A stretch of 64,000 nucleotides of DNA from Selaginella moellendorffii. Its lineage: Eukaryota; Plantae; Lycopodiophyta. Positions 59,832 through 64,000 of this stretch are shown here, one piece after another; position 1 is the stretch's first letter; every line of letters starts with the position of its first letter. The position numbers and the translations under genes were made by a program. The stretch is taken from contig NW_003314282.1 in NCBI RefSeq assembly GCF_000143415.4, positions 1,941,374-2,005,373 on the forward strand, given 5' to 3'. The notes under the pieces are model-generated. The model ran no database searches and was not told the DNA's origin. It saw only the letters and a list, made by a program, of their open reading frames with translations.

Positions 59832-62800
59832 ATGAGCTCGGCCGAGGACGAGAGGGAAGGGAATGAAGTCTCTTCTTCTGATTCTGGCTCTATAGGTGAT
59901 GCGCATCGTGATTTCTTCCCATTCTTCTCACTGTCGATGCTTTCCTCCGTTCTAGGGCTTGTTTCCTACACGGAGGCTGCGCTTGCAGCTCTGGAGGATG
60001 CAAATCTTGAAACCTTTCGGCATACGCTGCGGGTAATCCATCAAAACTTCCTCGCATCGCATTGGATAGAAATCTTTTTGCCACAGGGACTCACAAGAAC
60101 TGCCTCTGACGAGGACTTTGTGAATGCTTCAAGAGATGCCGAGCGCTTGTTTGCGAGAATAAACTCGCAGCACTTCTCCGTCTTCAAGCAAGCACTAAGT
60201 ATGTGCGCCAAGTGGGAAACTCTTCAACCAAAGGTAAGCGTGCATGCATTGTGGCACATTTTTTGCTAATGCACACCAGAGACTTTTTTCCAGATCCAGG
60301 CATTTGATGCATCGGCCTTTCGAGAAAATATGAGCTTGGCATTAAAATCTCTGAATCTTGCTGTCGATTCATGGGACATGCAACAAGTTGTGGAACTATT
60401 TGCGGGCCTTCTTACACACCTGCAAACTAAGCAACAGGATCCTGAACAGGAAGACTCGGCAGGCGACCTCAGTGGTTTTCATAAAGCGTCAGAGTTGCAG
60501 GGGGATGCAGCAGATGGAGACACGTCGCCAGAAAGCATTTCTGCTGATTTCCTTCCGAAGAGGTCTGGTTAAATTGGGTGATGTTATTGTATCTCGTATC
60601 TCGTTTCAGGAGCCAGGATCGGAATTGGTCAGAGTCATGGAAATTGGCTGTTAAAGGTGTTCTTCAGAAACAACGGCGTGAACGAATACGGTAACTAGCA
60701 CTGTACATCTGGTAATGAACCATATGACTTAGTTTATTCTCACTCAGTCACCGTGCAGAGATAAAGGACTTCAGAAAGTGCAAGCCTATACCAGAAGAAT
60801 CATTCCGAAGTCAGAAGGCACTAGGGAGCATCTTCGCAAGATTTTAAGGTGCATATATATGCCAAACAACACAAAATACTGGCCATGAGCTGATCATGCA
60901 GCGCAAGTTTTCTTTTCGGTGATCTGGAACCTAGCTTGAGGGAGGAAATTGTGGATGCTTTCGAGGACATCAGAGTATTATCCGGACAAAACATTATCAA
61001 GCAAGGGGATCCTGCAGACAATTTTTATGTCATTGTAAGTCTTGAAAGGTCCGTTACCTCATGCACAAATCTTTTCTAAAATTTGAGGCCTTTAACATTG
61101 TATGTTATCAATCGGTCTTTACAGGACGTCGGGGAATTTGACGTTCTTGTCCGGAAGGTACAGATTTGCTCCATGCTTCATGTCCTCGTGTTCATGTTGC
61201 ATAGCTTCAGGGGAGAGAAGCACCCGTGCTTGTGACAAGGAAAAGCCCGGGAGATTTCTTTGGAGAGCTTGCTCTCATGTATGACAGCCTCCGGAATGCG
61301 ACCGTCAAAGCCACAACAAATGCCCTTGTGTGGGCTGTAGACCGTACAACGTTCAAGTCCATCATGAGCCGTCACTTGGCTGGATCACCAGTTGCACAGG
61401 TGCCATTCTGCAATGACTGTTTAAATCGCTGGTATACTACTGAAACTTTTTCGTGTTCGTTATTGGTACTAAAATCTTGTTTCAAAAGGTGCTGCGAGAG
61501 GCTCCTGTTTTGAAGAAGGTCGCGACGAGAGACATTGTCATGCTTAGCAGTCAGGCTGAAGTTGAGACATATCGTCGCGGCCAGTTTATTTTACGAGCTG
61601 GATCGTCTATGGATAGGGTAACTATGTGTTTTTTCATTCATTTGTAACCAGGTTTTCATCTCTCAGATTTATATTATTCAAGAAGGACAGGTTAGAATAA
61701 GTTGGGGTGCAGCTGGAGGTTCATCTCGTAATTCTCGTGGTGAAACTGTTGCTGTTATGAAGCGGTTGGAAATACTTGGTGAGGCACTTATTCTCAACGA
61801 CGAGACGGTCATCTCGTGGAATTTCGTTGCTTCCTCTGAGCATGTAAGCTGTCTGACATTCTCGTATGGGATACAGACTGACGTAAGTGTGTTCGATTTC
61901 CAGACATCTGTCATTGTTATTGAACGGAGTTTATTCACTGAGGCACTTCTTAATGATATTAGGAAGGACCTCCAAGTGCAGCTTGTTGCGCTTGGTTTAC
62001 AGAGATTGCCTTCATTTCTGGAGCTAAGTTCCGAACAACTTTACAGTCTAGGCCGTCACTTTGACGATACCGCTCACGTCGCAGGTACTGAAAGGCTATT
62101 TTAATTCTACTGAAAGCTCACTTATTGATACGTTTTGCTTTCTTAAGGCGAAGAGATTACAAAATGTGGTGACGTTTTGGGGCCTGAAGCTAGAATTTAC
62201 GTGGTTCAGAGCGGGACTATATGTCTTTCCAAGTCTGCTGACGACGAAATGGTGATGACACCGCGTGGCAGCCATATTTCCTACACCTCTAGACAAAACG
62301 TGAGGGAACCAAGGGACTCTGGTATTGGCTTTTGGGGTAGCAGGCTTGGTTCACTACTTAAGTCCGGCAGTACACCTCAATCTCCACGAAATAGCAACTT
62401 TGTCGCGGGTGCACTGACTACCCAGGACTTGCTCAGTCTTTCACAGGGCCTTGGTGGATCGACTAAAGTTAGAAAAGGTGGAAGTCCTCGTCAGAGTATT
62501 GGGTGCGTTGGCTGTTCCAGTTTTTCATTTTAACTCGTTACTTTGATTGTGCAGTTGTAGCTCTCCTTGGACTCTCACGACCTATGGTGTTTTTGGAGAT
62601 GAATGCCTTTTAACTCGTGCAAGCGCAAAAGATGAAAGCTACTGGCCACCTTGCAAAACAACATCTGTGGTAGAATCTTCCAGGGGAATATGTTTATCCG
62701 TGACTATTGCGAAGCTGACTTCAATCCTTGGTCCTATTCAAGAGCTACTCACCCGGTTGACAAATACCAAAGTACTCGGGTAATGCCAAGTCTTTCTTAC

Positions 62801-64000
62801 TTTTATTTACTCTATCTTACACGAGTGCTTTGTCACAGGAAAATACATTGCTTAGACTACCTTTTTGGCTCAGAAATAGACTTATTATCTCATTCCATGG
62901 GCGTGAGAAAGCTACATTCTGGTGAAATGTTGTATCGAGCTGGAGACCCCGGTGATCGTTTATACATCGTGAGCAAGGGAACAGTGATCGAAACAGTACA
63001 TACTCCCACACCCGATGGGAGCAAACAGAAGGGGGACCAGATTCTTCTATCTAAGGGATCATATTTTGGAGAGAATGCTCTTTTGGATGACGAGCCAAGG
63101 CCTTCCACCATGGTTGCGGGAACAATGGATGCCAACAGACCAGGTTTGCTATCCTTGTGTAGCGAGCATTTTCTTAAAAGGCACGATATCTACAGGAGGA
63201 GCAGAGCTTTTCTACCTGGACAAGGGAGTGCTGGAGGCAAACTTTGGACCGCTCCGGGAGCTCATTGAAAATCGTAAAAAGGAAAATGAATTGAAGGGAA
63301 TTGTTAAAACAATCGGATATGAGGATTTGGAAGAACTTGGAATTATCGGAACAGGTCACAGCTTGTACTTGAGCTTTATTATTTCCTGACGCAAGCTCGT
63401 TTTGTGTATGCAGGGCTCTTCGGCAAAGTGAAGCTGGTGTTTTGCCGACGGACACGCGAGTATTATGCTTTGAAGTGTGTCAGCAAGGCAAAGGTTCTAA
63501 TACGTCAATATCTGAGCTGTTAGCCAGTTCGATATTTTATCATTCAAGCATGTTTGGATCCAGGTCATAAGACTCCAGGAGGAAGAACATCTCAGAAATG
63601 AGAAACTATTTATGACTGAAATGGACCATCCGTTTATCACCAAGCTTATTCGAACCTACAAGGATGACAAGAATGTAAGTCACAGTTGAACTTATGTCTG
63701 GGAGCTAAAATTTCTGAATACCATGCAGATTTACTTGCTTCAAGAGCTGACCACGGGAGGCGAGTTATTCTTTCATATGGAGAAAGTTGGGCCTTTGAGG
63801 GAGGCTGAGGCATCGTTTTATGCCGGTGCTGTTCTTTTGGTGTAAGTAGAGTATGTCTTTGTTTACAATCGTGTTGACTTGTCAAGCACAGGCTGGAATA
63901 CATGCACGGAAAAGGAATTGTTTACCGTGATTTGAAGCCCGAAAACACTCTGATAGGAGACAACGGCTATCCAAAGCTTATTGACATGGGTTTTGCCAAG
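59832..64000 (+). CDS. Cyclic-nucleotide-dependent protein kinase, PKG-like (about four CNB domains + AGC kinase), truncated at window end
   Basis: CNB-A: [31 protein letters not shown]. Two degenerate CNBs. CNB-D: [30 protein letters not shown]. Kinase: [51 protein letters not shown]. The 5' exons and start are less certain. Confidence 0.85.

Follow-up and report, generated by a model that had tools for sequence, protein, structure and literature searches.

Does the genome of a lycophyte encode a cyclic-nucleotide-dependent protein kinase of the kind known from protists and algae, and, if so, what might such an enzyme do in a land plant? The question is raised by a gene at the end of a 64,000-nucleotide stretch of the Selaginella moellendorffii genome (contig NW_003314282.1, positions 1,941,374 to 2,005,373, forward strand; hereafter the window, whose own numbering is used throughout). 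A first-pass annotation of this DNA had read there four tandem cyclic-nucleotide-binding (CNB) domains fused to an intact AGC kinase, and had proposed a cyclic-nucleotide effector kept only in plants with flagellated sperm. Reviews still call true cyclic-nucleotide-dependent kinases in plants controversial (PMC6174285). We find that the locus is a real gene for a single-chain, four-CNB kinase of the PKG type. On balance we favour the fuller account that it is the S. moellendorffii ortholog of a single-chain PKG-type kinase which is opened by cyclic nucleotide and which would serve as an effector of the sperm flagellum.

One gene encoding one chain

We built the exon model by hand from the ATG at 59832 and then refined it with RNA joints and orthologs; searches were run on single exons or on database orthologs, and the frame was followed by coordinate bookkeeping. 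Within the window the model comprises 3027 nt, or 1009 codons, with zero in-frame stops and with GT..AG at every intron, as found by a scripted frame check (exons and domains are given in Table 1). The exon ends agree with the orthologs (tblastn) and with the intron positions of Diphasiastrum, and the DNA is that of a plant with very short introns.

The public annotation divides the locus into partial models, P0001 (EFJ25644.1, SELMODRAFT_98922), which consists of CNB fragments and matches our exons, and P0280, a kinase of 289 aa. RNA contigs run from the N-terminal exons into CNB-A, from CNB-C into CNB-D and from CNB-D into the kinase, and the locus is thus one transcription unit. Its division into two separate transcripts, an outcome that the first-pass annotation had named as fatal to its reading, is ruled out by these contigs, which span all parts of the gene. 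Nor are there separate regulatory and catalytic chains of the PKA type, since the product is a single chain.

The first-pass annotation had also seen no PP2C domain, and Pfam indeed finds none, either in the exons of the window or in six orthologs. A PP2C domain further upstream is ruled out as well, because the 5′ end of the gene is closed by an in-frame stop (59799-59801, 30 nt 5′ of the ATG) and by a centrin gene. The transcript of the latter has its 5′ end near 59637 on the other strand, and therefore there is no room for upstream exons.

Four CNB domains, two of them with a complete cassette

The chain runs from an N-terminal region through an RRERI motif to CNB-A, CNB-B, CNB-C, CNB-D and the AGC kinase. 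That the CNB domains lie N-terminal to the kinase on one polypeptide follows from Pfam matches on the exons, from the RNA contigs and from full-length orthologs. A domain scan, the check proposed with the original reading, bore it out for only half of the array. With a cut-off of 27.5 bits for the Pfam family cNMP_binding, CNB-A (40.4 bits on exon 61211-61399, the N-terminal part of the domain lying in exon 60903-61034) and CNB-D (52.1 bits, exon 62840-63142) passed, CNB-B stayed below (21 bits, exon 61667-61843), and the exons of CNB-C gave no match.

More sensitive comparisons were made for the two weaker domains. A profile of the ortholog B domains matches PKG CNB domains in the PDB with an E value of 2.8e-6. 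The N-terminal half of CNB-C matches a PKG I CNB (E 2.6e-6) and aligns to domain D with an hhalign probability of 92%; with the profile of its C-terminal half, neither domain D nor any PDB entry was matched. A CNB profile of our own, built from database matches and run on full-length orthologs, finds four matches in every one of them: A at ~82 bits, B at 40-44, the first half of C at 20-33 and D at 106-112. In a 36-row alignment, FG[DE]ECL and LGPI of CNB-C occupy the canonical CNB columns FGE and LGPL. An AlphaFold model of the Marchantia CNB-C made from 7 sequences was unusable (predicted local distance difference test, pLDDT, 42). Repeated with the 36 rows, the modelling gave pLDDT >90 outside a disordered insert of ~80 residues, and a fold that matches PKG and PKA CNB domains with probability 1.00 and template-modelling (TM) scores up to 0.84, figures that are biased towards the CNB fold by the canonical CNBs held in the alignment. 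The claim of four tandem CNB folds thus stands by sequence for A, B, D and the N-terminal half of C, and for the whole of C by a biased model of an ortholog.

The claim of an intact kinase requires a similar distinction. Exons 63564-64000 match positions 40-146 of the 263 of the Pfam Pkinase profile, and the window ends within the kinase at DMGFAK, where DMG stands at the DFG motif. The partial model P0280 of the species itself continues past this cut and shows an intact remainder, with APE and on to subdomain XI, so that the catalytic residues of an active kinase (G-loop, Lys, αC Glu and others) are present, those up to DMG in the window and APE and the rest in P0280. Over exon 63893-64000 the identity with the Diphasiastrum ortholog is 100%. 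The N-terminal exons, for their part, have no Pfam match. They show weak similarity to the N-termini of Marchantia and Sphagnum (34-41% identity, E 0.011-0.063, tblastn); the corresponding Marchantia region yielded no lead in an atlas search and only sub-threshold noise in a Pfam scan.

As first proposed, A and D alone keep the Arg of the phosphate-binding cassette. Comparison of the orthologs shows the cassette Glu and Arg together in A and D of every one, and no such Arg in B or C, the latter reading FGDECLL...CKTT. The cassette of CNB-A is FGELAL...R-N, with Arg-Asn kept in all orthologs. That of CNB-D is FGE.AL...R, and the next residue is S, V, L or P depending on the ortholog (Pro in Selaginella; Ser in Diphasiastrum, Marchantia and Riccia). 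The Thr or Ser that would mark a preference for cGMP is therefore absent after the Arg of A in all orthologs, where Asn stands, and after the Arg of D in Selaginella, where Pro does. The choice between cAMP and cGMP is not readable from these residues, in agreement with the first-pass annotation.

The same residues leave room for a real kinase that is not regulated by cAMP or cGMP, with CNB pockets that bind another ligand (a nucleoside or similar), as in trypanosome PKA, or that are scaffold only. Such a kinase might be expected to look as this one does in several respects: two of its four CNBs are degenerate, the residue after the cassette Arg is non-canonical in A, where it is conserved as Asn, and variable in D, and cAMP-independent trypanosome PKA-R structures are among the fold matches of the CNB-C model. 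In every ortholog, however, A and D retain the Glu that binds ribose and the Arg that binds phosphate, two residues that the trypanosome PKA proteins have lost, and we consider regulation by another ligand, or by none, very unlikely.

A candidate pseudosubstrate before CNB-A

The RRERI motif recurs, as RR[EQ]RI, in the proteins of Diphasiastrum, Marchantia and Physcomitrium and in one Sphagnum paralog. We take it to have the form of a PKA/PKG pseudosubstrate, with Arg at P-3 and P-2, a non-phosphorylatable residue at P0 and a hydrophobic one at P+1. When the Marchantia segment 183-226 was modelled together with its own kinase domain in three runs, the complex scored 0.61, compared with 0.02 for the best control. 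Among 78 solved complexes 51 reach that mark, and among 108 mismatched pairs 2 do. At least 27% of the contacts agree between the runs, and the pLDDT of the partner is at least 35. In the models, residues 202-208 lie on the catalytic loop and the P+1 loop, with confident contacts of residue 205 (P0) to the catalytic Asp 973, of residue 203 (P-2) to 975/977 (loop Glu) and of residue 206 (P+1) to residues 1007-1010 of the P+1 loop. What the model shows is a likeness to known inhibited complexes, not binding.

Relatives in mosses, liverworts and lycophytes

A search with the CNB-D exon against 1.84 billion representatives returned proteins of Diphasiastrum complanatum (P0009/P0152; assembly GCA_029204225.1, PMC11276031), Sphagnum and Marchantia paleacea as well as proteins from transcripts. 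Using Diphasiastrum P0152 as the query, we found full-length orthologs (56-59% identity, 97-100% coverage) in Sphagnum tenellum, S. troendelagicum, Marchantia polymorpha (MPTK2_1g01440, MARPO_0029s0103), Riccia sorocarpa and R. fluitans, and an ortholog in Physcomitrium patens with 62% identity across 56% of P0152. One protein of 1161 aa comes from a moss transcript contig of 3969 nt, and so the fused protein is expressed in moss. UniRef and RefSeq already label several of the moss and liverwort orthologs, automatically, as cGMP-dependent protein kinase(-like). The family has in that sense been noticed; we found no characterisation of the four-CNB kinase in plants in the searchable literature, including under Mp1g01440 and Mapoly0029s0103.

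The next relatives, at 37-38% identity, are the PKG of Chloropicon primus and protist PKGs with three or four CNBs, followed by animal PKGs. A tree built from CNB-D and the kinase places the land-plant clade (support 100) on a long stem branch (1.23) and groups it with Chloropicon and the four-CNB protist PKGs at an approximate likelihood-ratio (SH-aLRT) support of 87-92. Among solved structures Plasmodium PKG matches CNB-D plus kinase best (E 3.7e-115); human PKG I comes second and the PKA catalytic subunit third. The closest relatives are thus the four-CNB PKGs of apicomplexans, ciliates and algae, and the description of the gene as a protist- or algal-style kinase was well chosen.

No seed-plant protein occurs among the matches above 40% identity, whether long proteins or kinase-sized fragments are considered, and clear angiosperm orthologs, which would have spoken against the original reading, are accordingly missing from these matches. 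Named orthologs come solely from mosses, liverworts and lycophytes, across which the family is conserved as judged by protein comparison. The stronger claim, that it is kept only in plants with flagellated sperm, agrees with these names and with the lack of a seed plant, but is not shown by them, as ferns, hornworts, Ginkgo, cycads and charophytes were not scored. Several further lineages are about equally distant from the mosses, the liverworts and the clubmoss.

Two observations on the relatives may be recorded here. Sphagnum has a second, shorter paralog (P0034, P0153, P0155, P0156; 767 aa) in which CNB-A directly joins CNB-D, B and C being missing, and in whose D cassette Cys replaces Arg (FGEDSLMSNEPCLST). 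The PKG of Chloropicon primus (P0173) has three Pfam CNB matches with a gap of ~117 aa (residues ~306-421) between the second and the third. Since this stretch can be aligned as a degenerate CNB, a degenerate third CNB may predate land plants.

Conserved frame and sampled RNA disagree at four introns

Of the 19 introns, 15 are backed by contigs from three studies, X1, X2 and X4 among them, and by a few raw reads, all from general RNA runs; for two of the 15 the backing is indirect. At the remaining four introns the joints listed show different splice sites or retention, and each change breaks the frame (Table 1). The joint 60690/60748 is seen in X1, X2 and X4 and in two raw reads. At the second and third of these introns the RNA joins 61048/61125 (X1 and X4) and 61431/61489 (X1, X2, X4 and one raw read), and the fourth is unspliced, X1 record 2 and X2 record 6 being continuous across 63411-63674. 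In a transcript of this form the first stop is codon 246. The ancestral sites at all four introns are backed by orthologs and by the Diphasiastrum intron positions: orthologs read FYVI/DVGEF at 61034/61125 and AQ/VLREAP at 61399/61489, and orthologs and P0280 read SKAK/VIRLQEE at 63493/63564.

One explanation is that the gene is transcribed but is being lost in S. moellendorffii, with the ancestral sites unused at the four introns and only an N-terminal peptide of ~245 aa possible. The altered joints and the unspliced 63494-63563 are indeed the best-supported forms at their positions (X1, X2, X4 and some raw reads), the early stop follows from them, the four introns affected are the longest of the model (68-90 nt, compared with 47-63 nt), and the public annotation of the kinase locus offers nothing but partial models. 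Against loss stand the 1009 codons of the window, all of them open, the intact ancestral GT/AG sites and catalytic motifs, and an open kinase fragment in both haplotypes. Moreover, rare isoforms are dropped by contigs, and the species makes flagellate sperm and keeps CAPE (PMC8115329). We regard loss as unlikely.

Because contigs drop rare forms, a productive isoform may exist. Two readings of the mismatch stand side by side. In one, transcripts in the tissues sampled are mostly dead ends, and productive splicing takes place somewhere else, spermatogenous cells being an example; in the other, decay of the gene has begun despite its intact exons. An extension of the first, in which the kinase is gated by splicing, with dead-end transcripts in the sporophyte and the ancestral sites used in spermatogenous cells, where the kinase would join CAPE and PKA as a single-chain effector of the sperm flagellum, strikes us as quite unlikely.

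As a separate observation, the affected introns measure 68 nt (60691-60758), 90 nt (61035-61124), 89 nt (61400-61488) and 70 nt (63494-63563), and all others fall within 47-63 nt. This split in length between correctly and differently spliced introns hints at a tight optimum of intron length in S. moellendorffii.

Table 1. Positions of the kinase gene, its domains, the segments added in RNA contigs and the neighbouring centrin gene, in window coordinates
Feature	Position	Strand	Remarks
CNB-kinase gene	59832..64000 (window end)	+	Start codon ATG at 59832; 20 exons in window
Exons 1-10	59832-59895, 59956-60032, 60087-60233, 60294-60562, 60610-60690, 60759-60848, 60902-61034, 61125-61157, 61211-61399, 61489-61617		
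Exons 11-20	61667-61843, 61904-62084, 62148-62502, 62555-62779, 62839-63143, 63196-63354, 63414-63493, 63564-63674, 63729-63841, 63892-64000+		
N-terminal region, ~185 aa	59832..60562	+	Without assigned family
RRERI, candidate pseudosubstrate (autoinhibitory)	60674..60688	+	~30 residues before CNB-A
CNB-A	60759..61399 (exons 6-9)	+	Phosphate-binding cassette 61259-61312
CNB-B, degenerate	61489..61960	+	LGEAL kept, cassette Arg absent
CNB-C, degenerate	61961..62779	+	FGDECL kept, without cassette Arg; low-complexity insert ~62230-62560 inside barrel
CNB-D	62839..63354 (exons 15-16)	+	Phosphate-binding cassette 63065-63118
AGC kinase, N-lobe through DFG	63414..64000	+	GTGLFGKV, ALK lysine; cut by window end
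11 nt included in RNA contigs	60748..60758	+	Acceptor 60747/60748; frame shift, stop at 60845
14 nt included in RNA contigs	61035..61048	+	Donor 61049 replaces 61035; X1, X4
32 nt included in RNA contigs	61400..61431	+	Donor 61432 replaces 61400; X1, X2, X4, one raw read
Retained 70-nt intron	63494..63563	+	In-frame stop inside kinase N-lobe
Centrin/caltractin gene, divergent	58748..59637	-	Head to head; transcript 5′ end ~195 bp from kinase ATG

A centrin neighbour and the sperm flagellum

The gene that lies head to head with the kinase encodes a centrin, with EF-hand Pfam matches and with caltractin (E 5e-29) as its best match in the PDB; Chlamydomonas centrin matches at E 1.3e-24. Its RNA reads end at 59637 and show a splice at 59570. 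In one stranded run of raw reads its depth was ~21, compared with 0.5-2 for the kinase. Upstream of this pair of genes lie the open reading frames (gag, protease/reverse transcriptase, integrase) of a long-terminal-repeat retrotransposon of the Ty3/gypsy type (43066-47365, minus strand) and a second, decayed and AT-rich copy (~50780-52470, plus strand).

A link to sperm is suggested by what is known of other plants. In Marchantia, sperm motility is controlled by cAMP, CAPE and PKA regulatory subunits (PMC11032487). CAPE is also present in S. moellendorffii (PMC5159850, PMC8115329). The functional data so far are confined to Marchantia sperm and to these two components, CAPE and the regulatory subunits of PKA; the study counts 14 CNB proteins and analyses PKA alone (PMC11032487). 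In our view a sperm-specific role of the four-CNB kinase is plausible.

The kinase could instead work in general, vegetative signalling with no link to sperm, its match to flagellate lineages reflecting ancestry only. Its transcripts do occur in ordinary RNA runs of several studies, and ferns, hornworts, cycads and charophytes are not resolved in the ortholog distribution. The transcripts in those runs, however, are of the unproductive form and of low depth, a promoter region of <200 bp is common to the kinase and the centrin, and a seed-plant ortholog is absent from the database matches. We give a purely vegetative role a small, though real, chance.

Discussion

The above results show that S. 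moellendorffii holds a PKG-type kinase gene with the architecture of apicomplexan PKG (P. falciparum and P. vivax; PDB 5DYK, 4RZ7, 5DYL), that is, a single chain with four tandem CNBs and then an AGC kinase. In both, one or more of the CNBs are degenerate and the last one adjoins the kinase. The plant proteins differ in having ~200 extra N-terminal residues with the RR[EQ]RI motif, and in that B and C are both degenerate and C carries a disordered insert of ~100-150 aa; identity to apicomplexan PKG is ~35-38%. Green-algal and protist PKGs (Chloropicon primus; the four-CNB P0174, P0181 and P0183) share three to four Pfam CNBs and the kinase, but only the plants, which are set apart by their long stem, have the N-terminal region and the insert in CNB-C. 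Animal PKG I and II likewise join CNBs and an AGC kinase on one chain and have a pseudosubstrate before CNB-A, for which the plant motif is a modelled candidate, and the plant orthologs end in WDDIF, resembling the animal PKG tail. Animal PKG, however, has two CNBs, a leucine-zipper dimerisation domain and Thr or Ser after the cassette Arg, whereas the plant protein has four CNBs, no zipper that was detected, and Asn or Pro in that place.

Two kinds of plant protein also invite comparison. The PP2C-CNB-kinase fusion of flowering plants ("plant PKG", At2g20040/50 type) similarly unites CNBs and a kinase in one protein, but the spikemoss gene has no PP2C and no angiosperm protein among its relatives, and represents a separate family. 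Marchantia PKA (MpPKAR1/2 and MpPKAC), which acts downstream of CAPE, resembles it as a cyclic-nucleotide-dependent kinase in a plant with motile sperm, but is made of separate regulatory and catalytic subunits with two CNBs rather than of a single chain with four; the main text of the Marchantia study does not treat the four-CNB kinase gene (PMC11032487).

A working model can be drawn from these parts. In the ligand-free state RRERI would act as a pseudosubstrate that fills the substrate groove, while the array of CNBs would keep the kinase closed. Cyclic nucleotide would bind the canonical cassettes of A and D, where Glu and Arg are kept, and release the catalytic domain, with B and C, which have lost the phosphate-binding Arg, probably relaying the change as structural modules, a part played in apicomplexan PKG by the degenerate CNB. 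In the sperm flagellar apparatus the kinase would then plausibly be a second effector of cyclic nucleotides, in addition to the module of CAPE and the PKA regulatory subunit known from Marchantia.

Several points weigh against this account, which we nevertheless prefer. The best-supported RNA contigs, from three studies, have no open frame at the four introns, and in view of these frame-breaking contigs the full-length protein is not shown to be made in S. moellendorffii. The kinase transcripts occur in general RNA runs, and centrin, the neighbour that points to the flagellum, is found also in plants without flagella. Nucleotide binding and activation of the kinase are predicted from the cassettes, and what follows the cassette Arg (Asn in A, Pro in D) is of neither the cAMP nor the cGMP type. 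Of the two structural models, that of CNB-C is not independent evidence, and the score of the pseudosubstrate complex may owe something to solved PKA-inhibitor complexes that the predictor had learnt.

A single observation is both new and unexplained, the mismatch in splicing between a conserved frame and the sampled RNA. For Selaginella, two partial public models are united into one gene. For the family, the single-chain CNB-kinase that mosses, liverworts and lycophytes have conserved offers a candidate cyclic-nucleotide effector that can be tested directly, and both Marchantia (Mp1g01440) and Physcomitrium are amenable to its knockout.

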